Origin: Rebecca billardiae RCC1528
Lineage: Eukaryota > Protista > Haptophyta
Reading direction: 5' to 3'
NCBI GenBank assembly: GCA_965240325.2
Contig: OZ251254.1
Span: 62,001 to 126,000, forward strand
Length of the DNA: 64,000 bases
Shown here: positions 22,063 through 36,505 of the stretch, one piece after another
How positions within the stretch are numbered: the first letter of the stretch is position 1
How the letters are laid out: the number at the start of each line of letters is the position of its first letter
Notes under the pieces: model-generated
What the model was told of the DNA's origin: nothing
Databases searched by the model: none
What the model saw: only the letters and a program-made list of their open reading frames with translations
Translations under genes and position numbers: made by a program

Positions 22063-23070
22063 TCACCACGCGGGCCCGCCGCCGGGCCCGCCCGTGCGCA
22101 TGAGCGGGTCGCAGCCGTCGTCCTCGACGAAGAGCGCGTCTGTGAACATCGCCTCGAGCAGCTCGCGCACGTACTCGAGCCGCTCGGCCGCGTGCTGCGT
22201 GCGCAGCAGCGCGTCGAGCATCGGCGGCGGCAGCCCGGCCGCGCCGCCGTCCGCCGGCGCCACGCCGCCGCCGCCGCCCGCCTCCGCGCCGCTGCCCTCG
22301 GCGTGCCGCACCCACGCGGCGCACAGCGCGAAGCTCGCCGCCTCCGGCTCGTCCGCGTGCGCCGCGAGGCTCTCCCGGCTCGCGTCCACCAGCCGCGCGA
22401 GTCCGGGCCCCAGCAGTCCGGGGCCAGCCGGACCGCCGGACTCGGGCGGCTCGACGCCCGCGCGCACGCGCCGCGCCGCCATCGTCGCCAGCCGGACCGG
22501 ATCGGCGTCGAGCAGCTCCCGGACTGCGGCGAGCTCGGCGGCGGCGCGCTTGGCGGCGCGCGCGTCGCGCGCGTCCGTGAACACGCGCGCCGCGCCGACC
22601 GTGAGCCCAAAGCCGAGGGGCACGGCGCGCGTCGCGCCCAGCACGAACCGCTCCGCGCCGGCGAGGGTGAGCTCCCAGCCTCCTGCCGCGTCCGCGCGCG
22701 CGCGCAGCACGCGGCCGAGCACGCCTGGGCTGTCGCGCGCGCCGCAGAGCACGCCGACGTACACTGGCGCGAGGCCCGCCGCGTCGGCGTCGGCGCCGAG
22801 CGCCTCGGCGCACCGCCGCGCGAGCAGACGCTCCGCGGGCGAGCGCAGCGAGTACGTGCGCGTGTCGCCGCGCGGCATGAGCGCCGGGTGGTGCGCGCCG
22901 CCGCCCGCCGCCGCGCCGGCGGGCAGCAGTGGCACGGCGGTGCTGAGCACGGCGCCGCCGAGCAGGCCCGCCGCGGCGTCGGTGTCGGCGTGGGCGGCGC
23001 GTCGGTGGCGCGCGGTGCGGTCGGGGCGCGCTTCGTTGCCGCCGCTACCACCGCCGCCAGCCGCTTCGCT

Positions 23071-23102
<32 letters not shown>

Positions 23103-25641
23103 TATCGCTGCCGCCATCGCCGCCGCCATCGCCGCCGCCATCGCCGCCGCCATCGCCGCCGCCATCGCCGCCGCCATCGCCGCCGCCAGTGCCGACGCCG
23201 CCGCCGCCGCCACCGCCGCCCGCGCCTCCGCCAGCCCCGCCGCCCCCGCCTCCGCCAGCCCCGCCGCCCCCGCCTCCGCACCCGAAGTCAATGTCCGCGT
23301 CCCGCCCTCCGCTCTCGCGCGCCCAGCCCTCCACGGAGCGCAGCGCCGCCGAGCCGTGCAGCGGACACCCGCGCGGCGCGCGCCACGCCGCGTCCGCACG
23401 CTCAAGCAGCGGCAGCAGCGGCGCCGGCAGCGGGCCCGGCTCCGCGGCCGCGGCCACGGCCGCGGCGCACGCGGCGTAGACGCGCGGCGCGGTCTCGCCG
23501 GCCGTGCCGCCGCCGCCGCCGCCGCCTCCGCGCCGGCGGAACAGCGCCAGTGCCGCGCCGCTGCGGTGGACGTGCGAGCGCGCCGCGCCGCCGCCGAGCG
23601 GCGCGATCGGAGCAGCCGCGTGCAGCCCAGCCAGGCGCAGCGGCGGCGGCGGTGGCGGCGGCGGCGGCGCGGCGGCGGCGGGCTCGGTGGTGGCGCCGGG
23701 TGGCGGCGGCGCCGGGCGGGTTGCGCTGCCCGCGCGCGCCACGCCCGCCGCCATCAGCGCGGACGCGGCGTCGACGCCGGGCGCGCCGTAATACGGCCCG
23801 CTGCCGTGCCACCCGCCGTGCGGCGCCGCGCGATCGCACGCGCCGAGCAGCAGCGCAAAGCGCCCCGCCCGCAGCGCGGGCGCGGCGGCCGCGAGGGCGT
23901 GCGTCGCGTCGCGGGCCGCGAGCGACGCCGAGCTCGCGCAGAGGGCGACGCGCGCGCCGCTCACGCAGAGCCCCGCCGAGTCGGGCGCGACGAGCGCGCC
24001 CGCCTCGCCGCCCCAGCCAGTGGCCGCCTCCGCCTCCGCCTCCGCCTCCGCCTCCGCCTCCGCCTCCGCCTCCGCCTCCGCCTCCGCCTCCGTCGCCGCC
24101 GCCGCTTGCCGCGCGGCGGCGTCGGCGGCGTCGGCGCCCGAGCCACCTGCGGCGGCGGCGGCGGCGCCGCCGCGCGGCGCCGCGCCGTCGGCCGCGCCGC
24201 CCCACGCGCCCTCGCCGCCGCCGGCCGGCTGCGCGCCCTCGCCGCCGCCGGCCGGCTGCGCGCCCTCGCCGCCGCCGGCCGGCTGCGCGCCGCGCGTGCG
24301 CAGGAGGCAGAGTGGTGCCCACGGCGCGTGCTCCGAGCCCGCGCCGGCCGGCGGCGCGTCCGCGCGCGCGCGCCGCGGTGGCAGCTGCGCGCCCCAGCGC
24401 AGCTGGCCCTGCGCCGCGCCGCTGCCGTCGTCCACAATCGCCAACTCGGAAAACGGCACCGCGATCTCGGCGCGCGAGATTGCGGCACCCGCGAGCAAAT
24501 CGGCGGCGGCGCCGCCGCCGCCGCCCTCGTCCGCGCCGCCGCCGCCGCCGAGCGCCACCGCGGGGATGCCCAGGTGGGTGAGCCGCGCGGCGCGCGGCGC
24601 GCCGCCCGGCCCCGCGCGCGCCTCGCCCTCGTCGAACCGAAAGTGCGCCTGCGCCTCGAGCAGTCCGGTGGGCGCGAGTCCGGACCCCAGAAGCACGGTG
24701 TCGACCGCGATGTCGCCGCTCAGCGCGACGCCCGCCACGCCCGCGCGCAGCGGACCGCCGCACCCGCCGGCGGCGGCGCCGCCCCACACCGTGGCGGCCA
24801 CGCGCGGCAGGCCGCCCGGGCCGGGGCTAGGGCCCGGGCCGGGGCTAGGGCTCGGGCTCGGGGCGAACGGCTCGGCGTCGAGGCCGCCGCCGAGCGCGCG
24901 CGGCCGCCGCCCGTCGGCGTACGCCACCGCGCCGAGCGTGGAAGAGTCCGGGAACGCGGCGTCCAGCCGGCGGAGCAGAGGCTCCACGTCGAAGCACGGC
25001 GTGGCGAAGAGCAGGAAGACCGGCGGCGCCGCGCCCGCCGCGAGCAGCTCCGGCATGCAGCGCAAGTCCGGGAGAAGTCCCGTGCGCTGCAGGCTGAAGA
25101 GCTCGACCTGGACGCGCGGCAGCCATGCTGCGACGACCGAGAGGGCGCGCTCGCCCGCCGCCGTCTCGCACTCGGCCGGGTCGAAGCGGTGGGCGTCACC
25201 GCCGGCACCGACGCCACCGACGCCACTGCCGGCACTGCCGTAAGCGCCGTCACCGCCGTCACCGACGCCGCCGCCTTTGGCCGCGCGCTCGCCGCCGCCG
25301 CCGCCGCCGCCGCGCGCCGGCGGCGCGGGGCGCAGCAGCGAGTACGCGGAGCAGCCGAGCGTGACGTGCGGCAGGCGCGGGTCGTGCGCGCCCAGCGCCG
25401 CGAGCACCTCGCCCGCCGCGTGCCCGCGCGTCCACACGAGCAGCAGGTCGGCGCCGCGCGCTCCGACCGACTCGACGCATTCGCCGACGGCGGCGGCGGT
25501 GGAGTCGGCGGTGGAGAGCGCGGCGGCGAAGCGCAGCTCGGCGTCGGGCGCGTCCGTGCGCGCGGAGGGGGTGGACGAGAAGGGCCGGCGCGCCGCGCGT
25601 GCGGCGCTCCACACGCGGCGCGCGCACGACTGGAGCGCCAT
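22063..25641 (-). CDS. FIST_N/FIST_C domain protein with C-terminal LON substrate-binding (Lon N-terminal-like) domain
   Basis: FIST_N: RFAAALST, TLGCSA, ERALSVVAAWLP, LLRRLDAAFP...GAVA, GVAGVALSG. FIST_C-like: FALLLGACDR...LAGLHAAAPIAP. LON-like: LMPRGDTRTYSLRSPAERLLARRC, LAGAERF, LLRTQHAAERLEYVRELL. The N-terminus resembles a mitochondrial presequence. Confidence 0.72.
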
Positions 25642-25756
25642 CGCCGCCGAGCGGGCTCGCGGGCGCGGCGTGAAGGGAGGGCCGCGCCTTCTGCGGCCAG
25701 CTGTCCGGCTGGGCCGTCTGAAAAAAGACCGAAAGACCGAAAGAGCTGCGAACTTT

Positions 25757-26918
25757 CAGGGACCGTCGCTCGCACTTTCCGCGGCTGCGAGTAGAGTGAA
25801 CTCGCACTCGCACTTTTGAGGGGACTTTGCGAGTGCACTGCGAGTTGAACTCGCAGGCCCCACTGGGCGGAATGGGTGGCTGCGAGTGCGAGTGCGAGTA
25901 AAGTGCGAGTCCCAACTCGCAAAGTGCGAGTCCCAACTCGCAACGTGTCCGGGGGCGCAGCCCCCGGACACGCCCAGCGGGGGGTCCGGGCGGCCTGAGG
26001 CGAAGAAAATTTTTGGCCCTATTTGGCCCTATTAGAGCATGCCTTACACCCGACCCGCCGCCCTGACCACCCTGCCACCGCGCCTGCGTCGCCAGCTGTT
26101 TGTCGGCGCGCGACACCTTCTTGAAGCCCGCAGCGAGGAGGCCCGATTGCTTGAGCTGCTTCTCGACGGGCATACTCACCGACATGCCCACCTGCTGCAT
26201 GGTCCGCTTCGCCCCCAGCGCTGCCTCGTCCGCCTTGATGGAGGCCTTCTTGCTGTACTCGGTCAGCGGGTGCATCGTCTTCAGGTGGTTGCCCGCGTTT
26301 GTGATCGTGAAGACCGACTTGCCCCCCTTCGAGCGCACCTTGTCGAGGGGGAGCGTGAAGCGCTGGCCGCATCCCGGCATGACGCACACGTGCGTGTACA
26401 GCTTCGGGTTGCTCGACTGACTGCCCACCTGAACGTACGAGAAGTCGGTCGGCGCCGCTTGCGAGATGGGGTGGACGTGCGTCCACAAGAGCGAGACACC
26501 TTTGCCGTTGGGGGGCAGATCGAGCCAGGCCGGGTCGATCACCCCGCGCTGGTTCGACAGCGACCAGACGGTGATCTCGGCAGCCGGCGCCGACGCAGGC
26601 GCCGAAGCGACCGGCGCCGCCGATGAGCTCGCCATTTGCCGCCCTGGGCTGGGCGGGGGGCAGCGAGGCTTTGACGCTTTGTGACTCGCCTGCCGTGCAG
26701 GCGGTCACGAGGCCGCCCAGGGACTCGCACTTCTGCTCGCGCCAACTCGCATGCTCGCGCTAGACCGCACCTTGCGAGTACCTTTGCGAGTTGACTCGCA
26801 AGCCCGCTGGGCCGGATCGGCGCCTTGCGAGCGCGAGTGCGAGTGCCCTGCTCGCACTCGCGCTCGCGCCCTGCTCGCACTCGCACCGCGAGTGCCTCGC
26901 TGCGAGCACCAGCCCCTG
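25757..26918 (-). mobile_element. Non-autonomous hAT DNA transposon (1162 bp)
   Basis: The left end CAGGGACCGTCGCTCGCA and the reverse complement of the right end CAGGGGCTGGTGCTCGCA match at 14/18. A perfect 8-bp TSD CGAACTTT sits at 25749-25756 and 26919-26926. TGCGAG/CTCGCA subterminal repeats are dense at both ends. Confidence 0.92.
26075..26635 (-). pseudogene. Truncated hAT transposase N-terminus (BED-type zinc finger)
   Basis: LLWTHV...VCVMPGC...TITNAGNHLKTMH fits the BED finger pattern. No DDE or dimerisation domain follows, and the frame reads on into the subterminal repeats. Confidence 0.7.
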
Positions 26919-26970
26919 CGAACTTTGCAGACCGGCGCGACCGGTCCGTCTCGCGCGGCCGCGTCTGGTC

Positions 26971-29900
26971 ATGGCGTCGCCGCCCTCGCCGATGCACGTC
27001 GCGGTGCGCATCCGGCCGGCGCAGCCGCACGACCCGCCCGGCGACGAGGCGCCCGCGTTCGCACTCGAGAGCGACCACGCCGTGCGCACGCGCGCCGGCG
27101 AGCGCGTCGCCGTCGACGCCGCCCTCGGCCCGGACGCGTCGCAGGCGCGCGTGTTTGAGCTGTCTGCGCGGCCGCTCGCCGACGCGGTCGTGGACGGCGT
27201 GGACGCGTGCCTCTTCGCGTTCGGGCCGACGGGCTCGGGCAAGACATACTCGATGCTCGGCCCCGACGACCACGCCCTCCTCGCCGACGCCTCCGCGCAC
27301 GCCGGCGTGCTGCCGCGCGCCGCCGCTCACGTGTTCAAACGGATCGCGCAAGTCGAGGCAGAGCACCGCGCGGCGGCGGCGGCGGCGGCGGGTGGCGGCG
27401 GCGGCGCGCAGGCGGGGCGGTGCGCGGCGGGGGCCGAGGCCGCCGTGCCGTGGTTCGAGGTGCACGCCTCGTACGTCGAGGTGCACTGCGGCCGAGTGTA
27501 CGACCTGCTCGCACCGGCAAGGGCGGCGGCTGGTGAGCCTGGCTGGTACGCACCCAGCCGCCTCGGCTCCTCCCGGACTCCTGGCCTCCTCCGGAGCCGC
27601 CTGGGCTCCCGGACTCCTGGCCCCCTCCGGCCGCCATGTGGTGAGCCCGCTGCGTCCAGCCATGCCGACAACAAGAGGCATCATCATCATCGCCACTCTG
27701 ATGATGTCGAAACACAACAGCATGCGACCCTCCCGCCGACGGCGGGCGCGGCGGAGGCGGCGCCAGCGGCGGCCGCGGACGACCAGGACGCGCGCGTCCT
27801 GGAGCCTGGGCGGCTCACGGGTGCGTCCAAGCCACCCGTGAGCCCCGCCGCCGCGCCGCCGCCGCGCACGTCGCTCCGGCTCAAGGCCGAAGGCCCGTCC
27901 GGCCGCGTGGTGCCTGCCGGCGCGCGCGTGGAGCGCGTGCGCTCGGCGCGCGAGCTGGTGCGCCTGGTGCGCCTCGGCTCGCGCGCGCGCGCCACCGCGC
28001 CCACGGGCGTGCACGCGCACTCGAGCCGCTCGCACGCGCTACTCACCCTGCGGGTGGAGAGGCGGTGGCGCGAGGCACGGGCGGGGCCGGGCGCGCGCGC
28101 CGACGGCGGCGCCGCGCAGCCGGGCATGAGCCCGAGCGCCGCCGACGCGGAGCGCGCCGGGGTCGCAGCAGACTCGGGCGCGCGCGCGCGCGTCACCACG
28201 CTCACTTTGTGTGATCTAGCCGGCTCGGAAGGGATGGAGCGCGCGCACGCGGGGCGCGCGGACGGCGCGGGCGCCGCGACGAACGTGGACCTGCTCTGGC
28301 TCGGTCGCGTGCTCGCGGCGCGCGCGCGCGGCGAGCCCGCCGCGCGCGTGCCCTTCCGCGCGCGCGCGCTCACGCAGCTGCTGCGCGCCGGGCTGGGCGG
28401 CGGCGCGCGCGCGGCCGCGCTCGTGTGCGTGTCGCCCGCGCGCGCGGACGAGGGCGCGGGCGCGCGCGCGCTCGCGTTTGCCGGCACGGCGCGCGCGGTG
28501 CAGCTGCGCCCGCGCATGCAGCCCGCCGCGCCGCCGGCGGCGCCGTGGGAGGCGCCCGACCCGCTCGCCGCCGACACCGAGGACCGAGATTGCAATCTCG
28601 GCCGGCGCGCCCTCTGGCTGCACACGCCGGGCGTGGGCGGGGGTGTGCTCTTCGCGCGCGCCGTCGGGCCGCCCGACGGTCTGCTGGTGCTGCTCGTGCA
28701 CGGCTCGGGCGCGCGCAACTCGTCGGCGGTGTGGACCGAGCTCTGCGTCGAGCTGCACGACCGCGCCCTCGCCGCCGCGGGCGCCGGCGGCGGCAGCGCG
28801 GCGGCGGCGCCCTTCCCTCCGCTGCCGAACGCCGGACTGTCCGGACTGTCCGCCCGGACTCAACGCTGGCCGGTGGCGCCCTTCCCTCCGCTGCTGCTCG
28901 TCGCCATCGACTGCCCCGGCTACGGCCGCTCGCCGGGCGACAGGCAGACGGTGCGCTCAGAGCCCGCCGCGCTGCTCAGCGCGGCGGTGCGCGCGCTCGG
29001 GCGCAGGGAGGCGCTGGCGCTCGTGGGCTCGAGCCAGGGCGCGGCCGCCGTCTTCAACGCCGCCGTGGACGCGCCGGCGCTGTGCGCCGCGCTCGGCGCG
29101 TGCCACCCGGTGCTCCACGCGCCGCTGGCGCGGCTGAGCGCCGTGCGCGCGCCGTGCGTGCTCGCGTTCGACGTGGACGACGACGGCCACCCTGTGGGCG
29201 TGGGCCGGCGCGCCGCGGCGCTGCTGGGGCGGCGCGCGCGGCTGCTCGAGTTCTCCTCGGCCGGCCTCGCGCCCGGCGGCGGCGGCGGCGCGGCCGCGTG
29301 GCTGCGCATGCATTTTGGCGCCGAGCTCTTCAGCACGCTGCGCGCCGCGCTGCGCGCCGCCGCGCGCCGCGGCAGGCCGCCCCCCGGCGCGGTCGCCGAG
29401 GGCCTTCCGCAGCTCGCCTCGCTCGCGGGTGGCGTGCGCGCGTGGGCCGGCTGCCGCGGCGCGGAGGTGGGCGCGTGGTACGCCGAAGCCGACGAAGCGC
29501 CGCCGCCGCCGCCGACGTTTGCGCGCGTGCCGCCGGGCGCGGCGTGGGAGGTGGTGGGCGAGGGCGCGCGCGGCGCCGGAGTCCGGCGGCTGCTGTACGT
29601 GCACCCGGAGTCTGGGACAATCTCGGAGCGGCGGCCGGACGCGCCGGTGGTGCGCGCGCGCGCCGGCACGGCGGCGCAGCCGGCGGAGGCGCAGCGGCGT
29701 TCCGGCGGCATCGGCGCGGTCGAGCAGGCGGACGCGAGGCGTGGGCACGGGCGCGCGCGCCGCGCCGAGCGGCGCGCCGCCCGGCCGAGCGCTGGGGGCA
29801 CGCCCGCTGGCGACGAGCCGGCCCCCGCCGAGTCTGCTGCGTTCATCTCCCAGCGTCATCTCTCGGAGACGGAAGCAAACAACTCGTCGTCGCCGGGAGA

Positions 29901-31329
29901 TTCGTCGGCAGATTCGTCGGGAGATTCGTCGGGCGCGGAGGAGTCGGAGGAGGAGGAGGAGGAGGAGGAGGCGGCGGCTGCGGCCGAGGCGGCGTCGGCG
30001 CGTCGCGCGCGGCTGGGTGCCGAGGCGTCCCAGCGGGGTTGCGAGCGGTGCGCACGGCCGCTCGCGCAGCCGTGGCGGCTGCCGCGCTGCCGCTGCCTCC
30101 TCTGCGCCGGCTGCGCCGAGGCCACCGTCGCCTTTGCCGCGCGCTGCCCGCTGTGCGCAACGGCCGCACCCGAGGGCCGCGCGCGCGCGCGCGCCGAGGC
30201 AGAGCCGACCGAGCGTGCGGCGGCCGCGGCCGCCGCGGCGGCCGCAGCCACGGCGGCGGCGACGGCGGCGGGAGAGGCGGCGGCGCCGCTTGCAGTGCCG
30301 GGCGCGGGGCCCGCGACCCCGCCCGGCCCACGCGCCGCGCCCGCGCCCGCGCCCGGCCGCGAAGAAGGGACCAAGGCCGAGTTCTCACGGTGGGCGGCCA
30401 TTTCTGGCGCGCTCTGTTTTGACTCTCCGCCCAGCCTGACGGCCGCACTCGCCGCGCAGCAGCAGCAGCGCGCGCGCGCGCACGCGGCGCGCGCGCTGCT
30501 GTGCGAGCGCGGCCCGTGTGTGCTCCTCGAGTACGGCAACGGCTGCGCGCCGGCGCGCGGCGGCGGCGGGCGCACTGCCTTTCGGACGGAGGTGCGCGTG
30601 CTGCGCGCGGCGCGCGTGCCCGGCGGCGGCGGCGGCGCGGCGGGCGCGCTGATCGCGCGCGTCGACTTTAACATCAACCCGGGCTACCCCAAGCCGACGG
30701 CGAGTGTGCTGCGCGCCGAGCAATCGCCCGACGGCGGCGGTGGCGGCGGCGGCCGCGGCGGCGGCCGCCGCGGCGGCGGCGGCGCGCCGCCAGGCTTTGC
30801 GTTTGAATACGCGATGGCGCGGCCGTTCCCGTGCGTGTGCACGGTGCACTGGCGCGCGGGCGTGCCGCTGCCGCCGCTGCAGATCAACTACACCGTGCGC
30901 GCGTGCGCGCCGGACGGCGCCGGCGCGCGCGGCCGCGTGCTCATCGCCCTCGCCACGTCGGCGCGCGCGGCCGCGCACGCGCGCGCGCTCGAGGCCGAGC
31001 CGGGCGTGCACATCCACCGCTGCTGCGCGGCGGCGGCGCTCGGCCAACGGCGCGGCCGCGCGGGCCCACCGCTCGTGTTCGCGGCGTCTGCCGTGAGCGC
31101 TACCGGGCCGGACCCTCCGGACGGGGTGGTGGTGGTCCTCCCTGCTGCTGCTGCTGAGCTGCCGCACAGCGATGCTCATCGCAGCATACTGCATAGCCAT
31201 AGGCACGACGACTACAAGTTGCCGCCGGTGGCGGGAGCGCGCCGCAGCCTTCGGACGACGACGAAGCAGCCGCTGCGGGATATGATCCGAATAGCTAATC
31301 CGAATGTCGTCGTGCGACGATATTATTAA
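26971..31329 (+). CDS. Kinesin motor fused to alpha/beta hydrolase, WW-like, RING and YEATS-like domains
   Basis: Kinesin: VAVRIRP, FGPTGSGKTYSM, SSRSHA, DLAGSE, VPFR..LTQLL. Hydrolase: LVHGSG, IDCPGYGRS, GSSQG. RING: CERC..C.C..C..C..CPLC. YEATS-like: LEYGN, IARVDFNINPGYPKP, PPGFAFE...PFPCVCTVHW. All lie in one frame. An in-frame intron near 27530-27720 is possible. Confidence 0.82.
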   Translation: MASPPSPMHVAVRIRPAQPHDPPGDEAPAFALESDHAVRTRAGERVAVDAALGPDASQARVFELSARPLADAVVDGVDACLFAFGPTGSGKTYSMLGPDDHALLADASAHAGVLPRAAAHVFKRIAQVEAEHRAAAAAAAGGGGGAQAGRCAAGAEAAVPWFEVHASYVEVHCGRVYDLLAPARAAAGEPGWYAPSRLGSSRTPGLLRSRLGSRTPGPLRPPCGEPAASSHADNKRHHHHRHSDDVETQQHATLPPTAGAAEAAPAAAADDQDARVLEPGRLTGASKPPVSPAAAPPPRTSLRLKAEGPSGRVVPAGARVERVRSARELVRLVRLGSRARATAPTGVHAHSSRSHALLTLRVERRWREARAGPGARADGGAAQPGMSPSAADAERAGVAADSGARARVTTLTLCDLAGSEGMERAHAGRADGAGAATNVDLLWLGRVLAARARGEPAARVPFRARALTQLLRAGLGGGARAAALVCVSPARADEGAGARALAFAGTARAVQLRPRMQPAAPPAAPWEAPDPLAADTEDRDCNLGRRALWLHTPGVGGGVLFARAVGPPDGLLVLLVHGSGARNSSAVWTELCVELHDRALAAAGAGGGSAAAAPFPPLPNAGLSGLSARTQRWPVAPFPPLLLVAIDCPGYGRSPGDRQTVRSEPAALLSAAVRALGRREALALVGSSQGAAAVFNAAVDAPALCAALGACHPVLHAPLARLSAVRAPCVLAFDVDDDGHPVGVGRRAAALLGRRARLLEFSSAGLAPGGGGGAAAWLRMHFGAELFSTLRAALRAAARRGRPPPGAVAEGLPQLASLAGGVRAWAGCRGAEVGAWYAEADEAPPPPPTFARVPPGAAWEVVGEGARGAGVRRLLYVHPESGTISERRPDAPVVRARAGTAAQPAEAQRRSGGIGAVEQADARRGHGRARRAERRAARPSAGGTPAGDEPAPAESAAFISQRHLSETEANNSSSPGDSSADSSGDSSGAEESEEEEEEEEAAAAAEAASARRARLGAEASQRGCERCARPLAQPWRLPRCRCLLCAGCAEATVAFAARCPLCATAAPEGRARARAEAEPTERAAAAAAAAAAATAAATAAGEAAAPLAVPGAGPATPPGPRAAPAPAPGREEGTKAEFSRWAAISGALCFDSPPSLTAALAAQQQQRARAHAARALLCERGPCVLLEYGNGCAPARGGGGRTAFRTEVRVLRAARVPGGGGGAAGALIARVDFNINPGYPKPTASVLRAEQSPDGGGGGGGRGGGRRGGGGAPPGFAFEYAMARPFPCVCTVHWRAGVPLPPLQINYTVRACAPDGAGARGRVLIALATSARAAAHARALEAEPGVHIHRCCAAAALGQRRGRAGPPLVFAASAVSATGPDPPDGVVVVLPAAAAELPHSDAHRSILHSHRHDDYKLPPVAGARRSLRTTTKQPLRDMIRIANPNVVVRRYY

Positions 31330-31826: not shown

Positions 31827-32174
31827 TCACTCCAATACCGCACTGCCATCAAGCTGGCCCTCGGCACGCACGGGCGCGCCTTCAAAAGCAGCAGGCGCAC
31901 CACGCTCGGCCGCCGCTCGCTCGAGGGGCGTCCTCGTCACGCCGCCATGGTCGCTCGCGGAGCCGCGCTCGCGAGCCAGCACTCCAGCAGGCGCGCGCGC
32001 CACGAGCCCGGGCGGTCCGGTGCCGACGGCGGCGGAGGGCTGTTCGTCCTCGTCGTACGGGAGGCCCATGTCGGCGAGGATTGCGTTGGAAAGGTCGTAG
32101 TCGCGCGCCGCCGCCGCGACCAGCCCCGCAAACTCGTCGCGCTCGGCGTCGACGGGCGCGTCGGAGGGGTCCAT
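31827..32174 (-). CDS. Small acidic hypothetical protein
   Basis: ATG-initiated ORF with protein-like composition (ERDEFAGLVAAAARDYDLSNAILADMGLPYDEDE), divergent from UPF3. No family recognised. Confidence 0.4.
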   Translation of the reverse strand: MDPSDAPVDAERDEFAGLVAAAARDYDLSNAILADMGLPYDEDEQPSAAVGTGPPGLVARAPAGVLARERGSASDHGGVTRTPLERAAAERGAPAAFEGAPVRAEGQLDGSAVLE

Positions 32175-32344
32175 GGCCGGCCGGGGTGGGTCAGCGGCTC
32201 GGTCGATGAAGCTGTGTGCCGCGCGCGCAATTCAGCGTGTCCGGGGCTGGCTCCACAGTCCGGCGCAGTCCACACACCACAGGTCCACAGCTCCGCAGCC
32301 GGACTCTCGGCGAGTCGCTCGGGCCGCAAGCAAGCCCTCGCAGG

Positions 32345-33100
32345 ATGGCGACGCCGCACTCGTCCGACCCGCCGCCGAGCGCGCCGCTCAAGCTCGTGCT
32401 GCGCAACCTGCCGCCGGAGCTCGACGGCGAGGCGCTCTCGCGCGCGCTGGCCGAGGCGAGCGCGCCCGCCCCGACGTGGCTGCGCCTCGACCCCGCCGCG
32501 CGCTGCGCGCAGCTCGCGGGCGGCGACGCGCGCGCGCGCGCCGACGCGGCCGCGGTCGCCTTCGTCGCGTTCGAGTCGGCGGAGGAGGCGCTGGCGTTCT
32601 CGCGCGCGGTGGACGGTCTGAGCCTCGCCGACGCCCGTGGCGGCGCGCGCCGCTGCGCTGTCGCCGCCGCGCCGCGCCAGATCGTGCCGCGCGCGCGGCC
32701 GCCCGCGCGCGCGCTCGCCGAGCCGGACTCTCGAGCCCCGGACTCTCGAGCCCCGGACGCGCATGCCCCGGACTCGAGCGCTCAGGGCGCGCTGCAGGGC
32801 GACAAGGACTTCTCGCGCTTCGCGGCCAAGTACGCGCGCGAGCAGCGCGCGCGCGCGGCGGAGGCCGAGCGCGGCGCCGAGCCCGCGGCCGCGAGCGGCG
32901 GCGCGGCGGAGCCGGCGCGCGGCGCGCCGCAGCCGCCGGCCGGCGGCGCGGCGGCGCTGACGCCGCTGCTGCTGCACATGCGGACGCTGCGGCAGCAGGC
33001 GCAGCAGGCGCAGCAGCCGGCGCAGCAGGGCTCGCTGCCGGCGCGTGGGCAGGGGCAGCCTACGCCGCGCGGGCAGCAGCCGGCGGCGCGCGGACAGCCG

Positions 33101-33171
<71 letters not shown>

Positions 33172-34168
33172 GCGGCAGCAGCAGCCGCCGCCGCAGCAGC
33201 CGCAGCCGCAGCCGCAGCCGACGGCGCGGCAGCAGCCGCAGCCGCATCAGCAGCAGGCGCTGGCCGACGGCGGCGGCCGAGTGGGCCACGCGCGCGGCGC
33301 CGCCCGAGCCGCCGCCCAGCCGCCCGCCGATCGGCCCAGGCAGGGCGGCGGCCGAGCAGCCGGCGGCGGCGCGGCCGGCGCGCCCAGCCCGCGCGGCGCG
33401 GCGGCCGCGGCGGCCGCCGCGGCCGCGGAGACGGCAGCGGAGGCCGGTTCGGAGGCCGGCGGCGCGCGCGGCCGCGGCGGCGGGCGTGGTGGGCGCCATG
33501 GCGTGCACTCGGCCGCAGAGCCCGCCGACCATCGCGGCGGCGCGCGGCACGGCGCGGCCGGCGGCGCTGACGACGGCGGCGGCGGCGGCGCGGCGCGCGC
33601 GGCCGCGGCGGCGCGCGGCGGCGCGCCGCCGGGGCGGGACTCGGCGGCGCGCGGCGGTGGCCGCGGGCGGGGCGCGGGTGCAAGTGCGGGCGCGGCGCGC
33701 GCGCCCCAGCCCGTCGCCGCCACGCCGCCGGAGGCGCAGCAGCACGCCGCGCCGCCGCCGCGCGGCGCCGCCGGCGGGCGCGGGCGCGGGCGAGGCGGCG
33801 CGCCGCCCGGCGCGCCACCGCCCGCCGTTGCGGCGGCGCCGGAGCGGCCGCCGCCGCCGCCGCAGCCGCAGCCGGGCGCGGGCGCGCGCGGCGCGCGGGG
33901 CGGTGGCGGAGCTGGCGCCGGGCGGGGCGGCGGCGGCGGCCCCGCGGGCCACGCCGCCGGCGCGAGTGATTGCGGCGGCGCCGCCGCCGGCGCCGCGCCG
34001 CCACCGGCCGACGCGGCACCCGTGCGCGTGCGCGGCCGCGGCGGTGGGCGCGGGGGCGCGCGCGGCGTGCGCGTGCGCGGCGGTGGGTCGGGCGCGTCGG
34101 CCGCGCCGCCGCCGCCGCCGCCAGTCATCGCGATCGCGCGCCGTCCGCCCGGTCCTGGGGAGCACTGA
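32345..34168 (+). CDS. UPF3: Nonsense-mediated decay factor UPF3 (Smg-4/UPF3 RRM)
   Basis: KLVLRNLPPEL, AFVAFES.EEALAF...VDG..L.D.RG....AV..AP.Q.VP, GALQGDKDF..F and TPLL all match the UPF3 domain. A poly-Q and RGG-rich tail follows. Confidence 0.82.
33103..33168 (+). repeat. (CAG)n poly-glutamine tract in UPF3
   Basis: About 22 uninterrupted CAG codons. Confidence 0.95.
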
Positions 34169-34423
34169 GCAGTCGCAGCCGTTGATGAATTCAGCAGCAT
34201 GGCGGCCGGCCCCGTCTGTGTAGCCAAAGCTGACTCCGCTAGCCGTCCAAGCCCAAGGGAGATCTGTATCTCCCTTGGCCTGTCCCGAGTCCCGAGTCCT
34301 GACGATCTCGGCTCCCGCCTCGGCCCGGACATACCTTCCGGGAGGCGACGCACCCGCCGAGGAAATCGCTACCGGTTGCCCCCGCCGTTGGCAGCGGCTC
34401 GGCTCCTCGCGCGCGCGGTTCAA

Positions 34424-36505
34424 ATGCTGCCGCCGTCGCCACGCGCAACCGACGCGGACGACGTCGTGCTCGACCTGCACGGCGCGGCGCTGGGCGAGGC
34501 GGGCGCCGACGCGCTCTCGCGCCGGCCGCATGAGCTCGCCGCGCTCACCGTCCTCCGCCTCGGCCGGAACGGGCTGAGCGACCGCGCGGGCGAGGCGCTG
34601 CTCGGCGCGCTCGCGCGCGGCGGCGCCGCCGCGCTCCGCGCGCTGCACGTCGAGCACAACGAGCTGGCGGACCGCGCGGCGGCGCAGGCGGCGGCGCTGC
34701 TCGCCACGCAGCACTCCCGCCTCGCCGTCCTCGACCTCTCCGCCAACGCGATCGGCGACGCGGGCGCGCGCGCGCTCGCGCGCGCGCTGCATGGCAACTC
34801 GAGTCTCGTCAGACTCGATCTCGCGCACAATCTCGTGGGCGACGCGGGCGCGGCGCAGCTGGGGCTGGCGCTCGCGCCGGCTGGCGCCGAGCCCGCCGGC
34901 GCCGCCCGACGGAGCCCGCCCTCCGCGCTCCGCGAGCTCAACCTGGGCGCTAACCCGGCGCGCGCGCCGCGGCCGCTTGAAGAGATCAGGGGCTGCTGTG
35001 CGCGCAACGCGGCGCGCCGGCTGGGGAGCGACGCGCGCGCGGCGGCGGCGGAGGCGGAGACGCCGCCGTCGGCGCGCGCGAGAGAGAGGGAGACGCCGAG
35101 CAGCGCGAGCGCCGAGTCCACGCCCTCGCGCGTCGACGAGGTCGACGGCGGCGCGTGGGCGCGCGGCGGCGCCGTCGCAGCGGCCGACGCCGACGGCGGC
35201 GCGCGGGCGCGCGGCAGGGCTGTCGCGGCACCGGGCGATGGCGGCGGCGGTGGCGGCGCGTGGGCAGGTGGCTGGAGTACCGTCGCTGCCGCCAATGCTG
35301 GCGGCGGCGGCGCTGGCGGCGGCGGCGGCACGCGGTGGGAGCAGCGACCGGCGGGCGCGGCGGCGGACGGCGCGCCGACGCCGCGCGGCCGCGCGGCTGA
35401 CGGCACGGTGCGCCGCCGCCCCGCCGACGCCCGCGCGTCCGCGCGCCCCGCGGCGGCGGCGGCGGCGGCGCGCGCCCTCCACGAGCCGCCGCCACCGCCG
35501 CACTCGCACATGTGGGACCAGCGCATCCTCGCCGCCGAGCTCTCGCGCGCGCGCGCGGAGCTCGGCGCGGCGCTTTCCGCGAACGCGCGGCTGTCTGAGA
35601 CGGTCGAGACGTTACGCTCCGAGTTTCGTCAGGGCGTGCACTGCGCGGCGGAGGGCGCGACGGCGGCGTGCGCGCGCGCGCGCGCGGAGGCGCGCGTGCT
35701 CGCGGCCGCGCTGGCCGACGCGGACGCGGCGGAGGGCGCGTGGCGCGCGCGCGCGCACGCGCACGCGGCCGAGGCAGCCGCCGAGCGCGCCGCATTTGCC
35801 GACGCGCTCGGCGCGATGCGCGACAGCGTGTGCGCCGCGCTCGCCCTCTCGCCGGAGGCGGTCGACGCCGCCATGCAGTTTCGGCTCGGCGGCGGCGCGG
35901 CGGACGGGCGGCACGCCACAGACGCGGCCGACGCTGCCGGGCAGCTGCAGGGCGGCGGCGGCCGGGCGGACGGCCTCGGCCGCGGGGGCGCCGCCGCCGA
36001 CGGCGGCGGCGCGCGGTGGGAGGGCGGTCCGGGAGGGCAGTCCGGTGGGAGGGCAGTCCGGGAGGGCGGCGGTGGCGGTCGGGCGTGGTGGCCCGGCGGC
36101 GGCGGCGGCGCGCCCGCGGACGACCGCGCCGGGCCCGGCGCGCGGCGCCACGCGCGCCTCGGCGGCGGCGGCGGCGGCGGCGACGAGAACGCGGGCGACC
36201 GTTACGCATACCGTTACGCCGGCGCGGACGAGGCGGGTGGCGGGATGCGGCGCGGCGGCGCGGCGGACGCGGCGGACGCGCTGGCCGACGCGGCCGCGCG
36301 CGAGGTGCTGCTGGCAGCCGGCGGCAACCGGCTCGTGGGCGCGCCGGCGGCGGGCGCGCGCGCCGGCGAGGGCGCCAAGCCGGCGGCTGTGCTGCACGGT
36401 GGCGCGCGCCCGCCGCACCAGACGGCCGCGCCGCCGCGCGCCGCGCCCGCTCGCGCCGCGCTGCGCTCCGTGGCGGGTCCTCAGCAGCACCAGGCCCAGT
36501 GGTGA
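34424..36505 (+). CDS. RNI-like leucine-rich-repeat protein with coiled-coil region
   Basis: 28-residue LRRs (LTVLRLGRNGLSD, LAVLDLSANAIGDAGARALARALHGNSSLVRLDLAHNLVGDAGA). The start codon is uncertain. Confidence 0.85.
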   Translation: MLPPSPRATDADDVVLDLHGAALGEAGADALSRRPHELAALTVLRLGRNGLSDRAGEALLGALARGGAAALRALHVEHNELADRAAAQAAALLATQHSRLAVLDLSANAIGDAGARALARALHGNSSLVRLDLAHNLVGDAGAAQLGLALAPAGAEPAGAARRSPPSALRELNLGANPARAPRPLEEIRGCCARNAARRLGSDARAAAAEAETPPSARARERETPSSASAESTPSRVDEVDGGAWARGGAVAAADADGGARARGRAVAAPGDGGGGGGAWAGGWSTVAAANAGGGGAGGGGGTRWEQRPAGAAADGAPTPRGRAADGTVRRRPADARASARPAAAAAAARALHEPPPPPHSHMWDQRILAAELSRARAELGAALSANARLSETVETLRSEFRQGVHCAAEGATAACARARAEARVLAAALADADAAEGAWRARAHAHAAEAAAERAAFADALGAMRDSVCAALALSPEAVDAAMQFRLGGGAADGRHATDAADAAGQLQGGGGRADGLGRGGAAADGGGARWEGGPGGQSGGRAVREGGGGGRAWWPGGGGGAPADDRAGPGARRHARLGGGGGGGDENAGDRYAYRYAGADEAGGGMRRGGAADAADALADAAAREVLLAAGGNRLVGAPAAGARAGEGAKPAAVLHGGARPPHQTAAPPRAAPARAALRSVAGPQQHQAQW

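Follow-up and report, generated by a model that had tools for sequence, protein, structure and literature searches.

The forward strand of a 64,000-nucleotide stretch from the haptophyte Rebecca billardiae RCC1528 (contig OZ251254.1, positions 62,001 to 126,000; the whole stretch is hereafter the window) contains, at 26971-31329, one intact gene, whose product is a divergent kinesin; the family to which it belongs is conserved, and so is its tail, which is new. Specifically, the encoded protein joins an N-terminal kinesin motor to an alpha/beta-hydrolase, a WW-like segment, a RING finger and a YEATS-fold domain, and this five-domain architecture is almost certainly real. The best explanation of the tail, held with evenly divided confidence, is that it would form a motor-borne module reading, de-acylating and ubiquitinating lysines on or near microtubules. 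That the reader, the eraser and the writer would act as a coupled unit is proposed more tentatively, and it is rather doubtful whether this would be the first kinesin family with its own protein-modification machinery, editing the tubulin code or spindle-attached chromatin. The gene and its segments are the following.

26971..31329, forward strand: whole coding sequence, in one frame and collinear with the full-length relatives across all domains
26983..28515, forward strand: kinesin motor domain (residues ~5-515), matched by Pfam Kinesin
27604..27966, forward strand: motor-loop insert of ~120 residues, delimited by alignment and absent from all relatives
28594..29349, forward strand: lidless alpha/beta-hydrolase domain (residues ~542-793), from the AlphaFold model and its fold matches
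29545..29637, forward strand: WW-like segment (Trp859 to Pro889), which maps onto the Pfam WW of the relative P0261
29884..29970, forward strand: acidic linker rich in Ser, Asp and Glu, with an acidic stretch at the same place in the relatives
30040..30156, forward strand: RING finger of the C4C4 type, C-x2-C-x12-C-x-C-x2-C-x2-C-x10-C-x2-C
30505..30960, forward strand: YEATS-fold domain (residues ~1179-1330), from the model, Foldseek, VIA and profiles
31153..31326, forward strand: terminal ~58 codons of non-coding-like composition, judged by G+C content at each codon position

A sequence-only reading of the window had proposed that a single frame joins these five segments, and the open frame, the G+C content at third codon positions (GC3) and the collinear relatives bear it out, with all segments lying where that reading had placed them. 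The motor is upheld by the Pfam Kinesin match (expectation value, E, 4.8e-51) together with an intact P-loop, switch I and switch II, the alpha/beta-hydrolase with its GSSQG elbow by the Abhydrolase matches of the family and by the modelled fold (Z 22.1 with 3bdi), the WW-like segment by its mapping onto the Pfam WW of P0261, the RING finger by a complete eight-ligand pattern and Pfam matches in relatives, and the YEATS-like fold by the agreement of model, Foldseek, VIA, profiles and hhalign. The profile support on which the hydrolase, RING and YEATS segments had been staked was obtained through the relatives, whereas the window protein alone passes Pfam for Kinesin only.

Conservation of the architecture across protists

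At least 32 full-length relatives (802-1197 amino acids) have all five segments in an unchanged order, and they represent several distantly related marine protists, namely dinoflagellates, the green alga Cymbomonas, a diplonemid and Ancoracysta, as well as metagenomes. When the whole protein served as the query of a word-indexed search, 14 relatives of 858-1137 amino acids (E 1e-81 to 1e-142, 33-45% identity) were returned; their sources are two dinoflagellates (Effrenium voratum and Alexandrium monilatum), the green alga Cymbomonas tetramitiformis and metagenomes, and the five segments are collinear and conserved in the multiple alignment with relatives. Moreover, an exhaustive search using a profile of just the C-terminal domain gave 169 clusters at E<=1e-3 (122 at E<=1e-10), mostly fragments, among which about twenty full-length proteins (950-1197 amino acids) bear the domain at their C-terminus; source names add Cladocopium, the diplonemid Namystynia karyoxenos, Ancoracysta twista and, for a form without kinesin, Telonema subtile. 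Because at least 32 relatives share the segment order, some of them as complete transcript open reading frames (ORFs), an ORF artefact driven by G+C content or a fusion of gene models is all but excluded. Separate genes, or splicing that uncouples the domains, would have spoken against the single frame, and neither was found family-wide: the database record from Ancoracysta bears the label of a complete transcript ORF, that from Namystynia is an ORF of a Trinity transcript, and the closest relative, P0007 (44-45% identity), is encoded by one unbroken ORF of 3,114 nt on a compact 16-kb contig.

In a quick maximum-likelihood (ML) tree of the full-length family, the window protein groups with P0007 (Shimodaira-Hasegawa-like approximate likelihood ratio test, SH-aLRT, 92) and then with Cymbomonas (91) on a long branch, and two deep clades are present, one of the diplonemid and Ancoracysta type and the other of the dinoflagellate and green-algal type. 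In the Cymbomonas protein P0003, the five domains occupy 1,012 amino acids with linkers of ~116 amino acids in total; since the domains fill the chain, such compact relatives have no space for a coiled-coil stalk. Public entries of the family are labelled kinesin-like, kinesin motor domain-containing, hypothetical or "pimeloyl-ACP methyl ester carboxylesterase", and their precomputed Pfam labels cover the kinesin and hydrolase parts only. The claim that no described kinesin family has this architecture is consistent with searches of the open-access literature, but the architecture also exists outside this genome and lies unannotated in public protein sets.

As a side observation, the P0007 gene (L001 572-3685) sits among intergenic gaps of ~40-200 nt on its contig and is adjoined by a GH123-domain gene; this compactness suggests a small, gene-dense eukaryotic genome.

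Integrity of the reading frame

The single open frame at 26971-31329 comprises 1,452 codons followed by a TAA stop; the enclosing ORF spans 26791..31329 on the forward strand and its first ATG lies at 26971, giving an N-terminus (M-A-S-P-P-S-P-M-H-V-A-V-R-I-R-P) that aligns with those of the relatives. The length of the ORF is by itself weak evidence, because the window is very rich in G+C (54-83% per 2 kb, and 78.9% across the ORF) and long ORFs are frequent on both strands. Nevertheless, a stop-free run of 1,452 codons at the composition of the ORF has a probability of ~4e-7, the open runs of 2,000 shuffles all fell short of it (at most 1,155 codons, median 300), and the remaining five frames contain 4-17 stops each over the same interval. 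From ~26900 to ~31100, the kinesin frame keeps a GC3 of 0.82-0.99 and a G+C content at second codon positions of 0.54-0.84 (mostly 0.6-0.7); this pattern is lost at both ends of the ORF, where intergenic DNA starts, and the interior holds no stretch of intergenic-type composition. Two overlapping ORFs, at 26542-28035 on the reverse strand (498 amino acids) and at 28425-30419 on the forward strand (665 amino acids), match zero Pfam families; as an observation of its own, they illustrate non-coding frames kept open by a G+C content of 79%.

The 3' end of the ORF is of a different kind. Between 31101 and 31400, G+C content by codon position drops to 0.63/0.51/0.61, and the relatives terminate shortly past a P-P-x-x-G-W strand, earlier than the window ORF does. 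A GTGAGC near 31094 is a candidate splice donor, and the C-terminus of the window product is uncertain.

The kinesin motor

Pfam Kinesin scores 174.1 bits on the window protein against a cutoff of 29.3, and kinesins of the PDB match it at E 1e-26. Residue conservation is counted here and below over an alignment of 33 family members including the window protein. The motor carries the P-loop, SSRSH and DLAGSE motifs by which the kinesin superfamily is recognised, as follows.

27223..27246, forward strand: P-loop GPTGSGKT, with G85, G90 and K91 invariant
28012..28035, forward strand: switch I HAHSSRSH, with SSRSH invariant in 33/33
28213..28230, forward strand: switch II DLAGSE, with D, L, A, G and E invariant in 33/33
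28282..28293, forward strand: NVDL motif, the Asp of which is copy-specific (G in 30/33)

The deviations from the kinesin consensus that had been flagged in HAHSSRSH and NVDL are both real and differ in kind. The first position of switch I is His in 23 of the 33 members and Asn in 10, and its His, judging from the alignment, is a clade trait common to one deep clade; conversely, the Asp of N-V-D-L is peculiar to this copy, as are Pro86 in the P-loop (Gln in 18/29 at that position), Phe462 and Ala464.

The ~120-residue motor insert is in frame, and GC3 falls to 0.73 at 27501-27800. A His-rich stretch of lower G+C content occupies 27660-27725 within it, and a donor-like GGTGAGC (27640-27646) and a CAG (27718-27720) are also found inside. 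A lone intron from GT (27641) to AG (27720) was considered and rejected, being 80 nt long, which is not a multiple of three, with both flanks in the same frame; further donors, at 27821 and 27838, are candidates only.

Among PDB structures, the profile of the family motor matches KIF4 (3zfc) best with 362 bits, followed at 329-335 bits by KIF3B, Klp61F, KIF7 and KIF14, so that the lead of KIF4 over the structures of kinesin-2, -5 and -3 is just ~27-33 bits. Similarly, the nearest database matches outside the family are KIF4, KIF21, KIF27 and KIN-4A. A quick ML tree built from 42 motors, the references of which are limited to kinesin-4, -5, -7-like and -14, shows the family as monophyletic (SH-aLRT 98) and outside the KIF4/KIF21 group (87), with an unresolved base; on this limited reference sampling, the rank of the family is provisional. 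In the same tree, the haptophyte kinesin P0023 (Diacronema lutheri, 1,365 amino acids) appears as the weakly supported sister of the whole family (SH-aLRT 79).

The alpha/beta-hydrolase

The window protein alone gives a match to Pfam Abhydrolase_1 below the cutoff (E 0.0085, 16.2 bits against 25.8), whereas 13 of 15 family members match this model, the best at 4e-9, and Abhydrolase_6 passes its cutoff of 26.3 bits in the relatives P0261 (37.5), P0147 (34.5) and P0162 (29.4). A profile of 33 hydrolase sequences finds in the PDB HsaD/BphD (1e-8), Ta0194 (2e-8) and CIB (1imj, 2.9e-4). The AlphaFold model of the domain (predicted local distance difference test, pLDDT, 87; predicted template modelling score, pTM, 0.88) has as its best Foldseek match 3bdi, a "CIB-like hydrolase" (E 1e-8, TMt 0.80, probability 1.00), and VIA superposes the two at Z 22.1 over 195/207 residues with a root-mean-square deviation of 2.2, the highest value among 1,000 compared chains that all reach Z>=8. 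The lid of HsaD is missing here, since its residues 138 and 222 pair with positions 152 and 157 of the profile. The sequence elements of a putative active site are listed below.

28696..28710, forward strand: V-H-G-S-G at the usual position of the oxyanion-hole HG motif, with H577, G578, S579 and G580 in 32/33
29026..29040, forward strand: nucleophile elbow G-S-S-Q-G (Ser688), with G686, S688, Q689 and G690 invariant in 33/33
29176..29196, forward strand: D-D-D-G-H-P-V, with the acid position Asp737 and with His740, both invariant in 33/33
29311..29313, forward strand: His781, present in the window at the canonical position of the catalytic histidine after strand 8

The position of V-H-G-S-G points to a role in the oxyanion hole. 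In HsaD, the counterpart of Asp737 lies in the acid-bearing "ED" that follows strand 7, and the profile match to CIB (1imj) stops at CIB residue 162, which is its catalytic Asp (10.1101/2023.07.30.551196). The invariance of GSSQG and Asp737 in all 33 members argues against a dead enzyme, and the hydrolase is probably catalytically active. As for the base, the invariant His740 of D-x-G-H-P-V may be the real, non-canonical one. An SGNH-type reading of D-x-G-H-P, suggested by its likeness to the D-x-x-H block of SGNH hydrolases, was rejected, both fold and sequence being those of an alpha/beta-hydrolase.

The WW-like segment and the RING finger

The stretch of P0261 that scores 30.5 bits with Pfam WW (gathering score 26.9) maps to the WW-like segment of the window protein, and W859 and P889 are conserved in 30/33 and 32/33 members, respectively. 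In the window segment, the signature of two Trp ~20-22 residues apart plus a Pro is incomplete, with Glu at the second Trp position, where Trp is found in 4/33. The WW domain appears mostly degenerate, and its homology to true WW domains is supported via P0261.

The RING finger presents all eight zinc ligands with the canonical spacing C-x2-C-x(9-39)-C-x(1-3)-[HC]-x(2-3)-C-x2-C-x(4-48)-C-x2-C. Seven Cys ligands are invariant in 33/33, and C1062 is conserved in 30/33. The window belongs to the 11 members with Cys as ligand 4 (C4C4), the other 22 having His there (C3HC4), in line with true RINGs, where this ligand varies between Cys and His. Pfam scanning of the window protein alone reaches only zf-RING_6 at E 0.64, whereas RING models match up to 6 of 15 family members; among further relatives, P0188 (zf-C3HC4, 24.1 bits) and P0204 (21.3) exceed the cutoff of 21 bits. 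The second residue after the first Cys, which in many RINGs is a site of contact with the E2, is Leu in the family consensus (C-D-L-C) and Arg in the window copy (C-E-R-C).

The YEATS-fold domain

The C-terminal domain has a YEATS fold, as judged from its model and profiles. Pfam YEATS (PF03366) does not match the window protein alone; in the relatives, it scores 22.8 bits on P0204 and 21.6 on P0261 against a gathering score of 22, over stretches that map to window residues 1223-1310. A profile of 14 domain sequences meets five PDB chains at E<10, all of them YEATS (TAF14b at 0.0091 and four Yaf9 at ~0.2); with 53 sequences, the result is weaker, TAF14b coming first at 0.07 and the sole other match at E<=10 being a dipeptidase. 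The model built on the 53-sequence alignment (pLDDT 80, pTM 0.80) retrieves YEATS domains in 50/50 of the best Foldseek matches, and in a VIA comparison with 48,161 chains the eight with Z>=8 are all YEATS (8.0-10.8), followed at 6.3 by a generic beta-sandwich. Lastly, hhalign of the family domain with P0253, a protein of RING and YEATS domains described below, yields a probability of 95.3%.

Two motifs correspond to the ligand pocket of YEATS domains, the first of them aligned to TAF14b, Yaf9 and P0253.

30661..30705, forward strand: V-D-F-N-I-N-P-G-Y, counterpart of the YEATS pocket wall V-x-F-x-L-H-x-S-F, with V1231, N1236 and P1237 invariant in 33/33
30802..30852, forward strand: F-E-Y-A-M-A-R-P-F-P-C, counterpart of the YEATS loop G-[WY]-G-x-F, with M1282 in 32/33, C1288 in 32/33 and F/Y1286 in 33/33

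The acyl-lysine pocket of AF9 is formed by F28, H56, S58, F59, Y78 and F81 (PMC12362337). With F28 outside the mapped set, alignment places these residues in the window protein as follows.

AF9 His56: Asn1236, invariant in 33/33
AF9 Ser58: Gly1238, variable, Gly in 15/33
AF9 Phe59: Tyr1239, Tyr or Phe in 29/33
AF9 Tyr78: Ala1283, Ala in 21/33, otherwise other small residues
AF9 Phe81: Phe1286, Phe or Tyr in 33/33

The suspicion that the aromatic cage is altered is thereby confirmed, with His56 replaced by Asn and Tyr78 by Ala. Met1282 and Cys1288, in turn, are family-specific. The pocket is remodelled and still under strong constraint within the family.

Tail domains outside the kinesin

Proteins that lack a motor contain the tail domains as well, in two forms. 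The first consists of uncharacterised stand-alone proteins (P0253, P0251, P0258, P0326-P0331) that come from environmental data under the label "hypothetical protein". They share with the kinesin family the order RING then YEATS and a RING ending in R-Y-x-R-x-C-P-x-C, but measure 200-352 amino acids, lack motor, hydrolase and WW, and retain the canonical pocket His and Trp (I-H-P-T-F, G-W-G-T-F). In P0253 (162 bits with Pfam YEATS), P0251 and P0258, the Pfam YEATS match is unambiguous; P0253 reaches plant GAS41 at E 3.5e-13 and is itself recovered by the profile of the family YEATS domain at E 1.9e-7 in an exhaustive search. RING-YEATS is an independent cassette.

The second form, of which three representatives were seen, includes the hydrolase. 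The metagenome protein P0188 combines the RING, the YEATS-like domain and the hydrolase in permuted order and without kinesin, its three tail domains being 32-46% identical to those of the family member P0002, and in P0165 of Telonema subtile and in P0182 this hydrolase comes after the YEATS-like domain, again without kinesin. Unlike in the motor family, the hydrolase comes last in all three, motor and WW are absent, and a RING is detected in P0188 only. The best argument so far for the tail domains cooperating is that RING, YEATS-like domain and hydrolase keep together even where the motor is absent.

Comparison with known systems

Kinesin tails usually bind cargo via coiled coils and small adaptor domains, and a tail that combines an enzyme with an E3-type finger and the fold of a histone reader, conserved across very distant protists, represents a different design principle for a motor. 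If this were indeed the first kinesin family with its own protein-modification machinery, the family would be old, being present in Discoba, Alveolata, Archaeplastida and Provora. No paper describing a kinesin with a YEATS, WW, RING or hydrolase tail was found in the open-access literature. A 2010 survey reported that 1,300 of 1,624 kinesins have no identifiable non-motor domain and catalogued 105 architectures; in the text and supplements that were searched, hydrolase, Abhydrolase, YEATS and zf-C3HC4 are not mentioned (PMC2867816).

The kinesin-4 group (KIF4A, KIF7/KIF27, KIF21) resembles the family in its N-terminal motor, for which KIF4 3zfc is the best profile match. In contrast, the family forms its own clade outside KIF4/KIF21 (on the limited references of the motor tree), has no coiled-coil stalk, begins switch I mostly with His, and has zero members with PF25764, which the kinesin-4-like matches carry.

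The hydrolase is similar to CIB/ABHD14B and to the archaeal Ta0194 (3bdi, 1imj), which are also small lidless alpha/beta-hydrolases with Ser and Asp at the catalytic positions. ABHD14B, a relative of CIB, has been reported to act as a lysine deacetylase (PMC9270251), and the ABHD14 proteins are characterized by an S-x-S-x-S nucleophile motif and ABHD14B by an H-x4-D acyltransferase motif (10.1101/2023.07.30.551196). The family differs in its G-S-S-Q-G elbow, in having H/N-x3-E instead of H-x4-D, and in an extra invariant D-x-G-H-P-V, and the identity is only ~15-18%; because S-x-S-x-S and H-x4-D are both lacking, the resemblance to ABHD14B is structural only and does not amount to membership.

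The YEATS readers (AF9, ENL, GAS41/YEATS4, YEATS2, Taf14, Yaf9, Sas5) have the same fold, and their Y-G-N, V-x-F-x-[LI]-x-P/S-x-[FY] and T-[VL]-H-F motifs are recognisable in the family domain. Conversely, the AF9-pocket positions are changed in the family, apart from Phe59 and Phe81, which are kept as Tyr/Phe; extra C-terminal strands are present; and the domain is borne on a kinesin and not on a described chromatin-reader protein. That a YEATS fold sits on a motor and has a pocket both altered and strictly conserved suggests that its ligand is a new one for this reader fold. Natural controls exist in the RING-YEATS pair and in the hydrolase-containing form without kinesin, and each domain can be expressed and assayed separately.

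Proposed function and competing explanations

In the motor-borne modification module, the motor would bind microtubules and possibly move, holding a three-part module for lysine modification at or close to them. The movement would be plus-end-directed, as is expected of N-terminal kinesin motors, and since the hydrolase starts ~30 residues after the motor, movements of the neck would displace it directly. The YEATS-like domain would dock on an acyl-type modified lysine of a partner, the Ser688 hydrolase would take off an acyl or ester group, and the RING would recruit an E2 and ubiquitinate either that partner or a protein next to it. The two leading candidates for the substrate are tubulin or microtubule-associated proteins and, in a chromokinesin-like role, chromatin.

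Several observations weigh against this explanation or against a functional window copy. The catalytic base is uncertain because position 781 is Asn in 14/33 members (His in 15/33) and because His781 is modelled inside a helix that starts at residue 246 of the local numbering. The ligand-binding second Trp of the WW is missing in 29/33 members, and the AF9 residues that hold acetyl-lysine, His56 and Tyr78, are lost to Asn and Ala, so the ligand of the YEATS domain may not be an acyl-lysine at all. Moreover, the window copy differs at 20 of 163 highly conserved family positions (12.3%; family range 0.6-14.4%), with changes in the motor that include Gly440 to Asp and Asp464 to Ala, and contains three low-complexity inserts.

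Some of these points fit a tail that is a cargo or scaffold adaptor, in which the YEATS-like and WW-like segments would bind a protein, the hydrolase would have a small molecule or a lipid ester as its substrate, or be inert in many members, and the motor would transport or position the partner. The remodelled YEATS pocket, the degenerate WW, the loss of the canonical His in 14/33 and the structural neighbours of the hydrolase, which at Z 19-22 comprise esterases, lipases and C-C hydrolases with widely differing specificities, are all in agreement with such an adaptor. However, Ser688, Asp737, His740, N-I-N-P and M-A-R-x-F-P-C show little or no variation across the deep clades, which points to a conserved chemistry and a conserved ligand, and RING, YEATS and hydrolase travel together in proteins without a motor. 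An adaptor tail is possible and yet on the improbable side.

A chromokinesin-like variant, in which a histone-mark-reading YEATS domain would tether chromosomes or nuclear structures to spindle microtubules and the RING and hydrolase would edit histone lysines, is unlikely. The best profile match of the motor to KIF4 (362 bits), the nearest non-family sequences (KIF4, KIF21, KIF27), the original name of CIB ("CCG1-interacting factor B") and the reading of acylated histones by the described YEATS proteins (PMC12362337) would suit it. Against these stand the placement of the family as a separate clade (SH-aLRT 98) outside KIF4/KIF21 in the limited tree, the changed acetyl-lysine pocket, and the fact that no DNA-binding or nuclear-targeting feature could be shown in the family. 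In addition, the family is well represented in dinoflagellates, in which most DNA is packaged without nucleosomes.

It is very unlikely that the window copy is a decaying or functionless paralogue, open merely because stops are rare in DNA of 79% G+C. Its deviation at conserved positions is near the top of the family range, its branch is long (1.52), and the three inserts and the odd 3' tail are further peculiarities of this copy; but P0229 (14.4%) and P0261 (12.0%) deviate as much, many of the changes go to Ala or Gly, as expected of extreme G+C pressure, and the catalytic and zinc-binding residues are all kept. Furthermore, 4.36 kb run without frameshift or stop where the other five frames hold 4-17 stops each, at an in-frame GC3 of 0.82-0.99. 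The window copy is therefore read as a divergent but apparently intact member.

Finally, an artefact in which neighbouring genes or foreign exons happen to share one stop-free frame of GC-rich DNA, for which the frequent long ORFs on both strands could be cited, is extremely improbable in view of the same five-domain order in at least 32 proteins of unrelated organisms (complete transcript ORFs included), of an interior that, unlike both ends, has no intergenic-type composition, and of other-frame ORFs that match no family.

Neighbouring reading frames and other fusions

The ORFs that flank the kinesin gene, all on the reverse strand at 22066-25641 (1,192 amino acids), 25262-26635 (458 amino acids) and 31940-35509 (1,190 amino acids), gave no Pfam match at E<=1e-3 in single-sequence scans, a kind of scan that is weak in this genome, as the kinesin fusion demonstrates.

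Outside the kinesin family, metagenome data contain a fusion of YEATS with a SIR2 deacylase (P0337), and fusions of YEATS with a papain-type peptidase are found in P0332 and P0338, the latter labelled pYEATS and derived from a metagenome-assembled genome of Spirochaetota. On the basis of their predicted domains, these three proteins appear to be further fusions of a reader with an enzyme.

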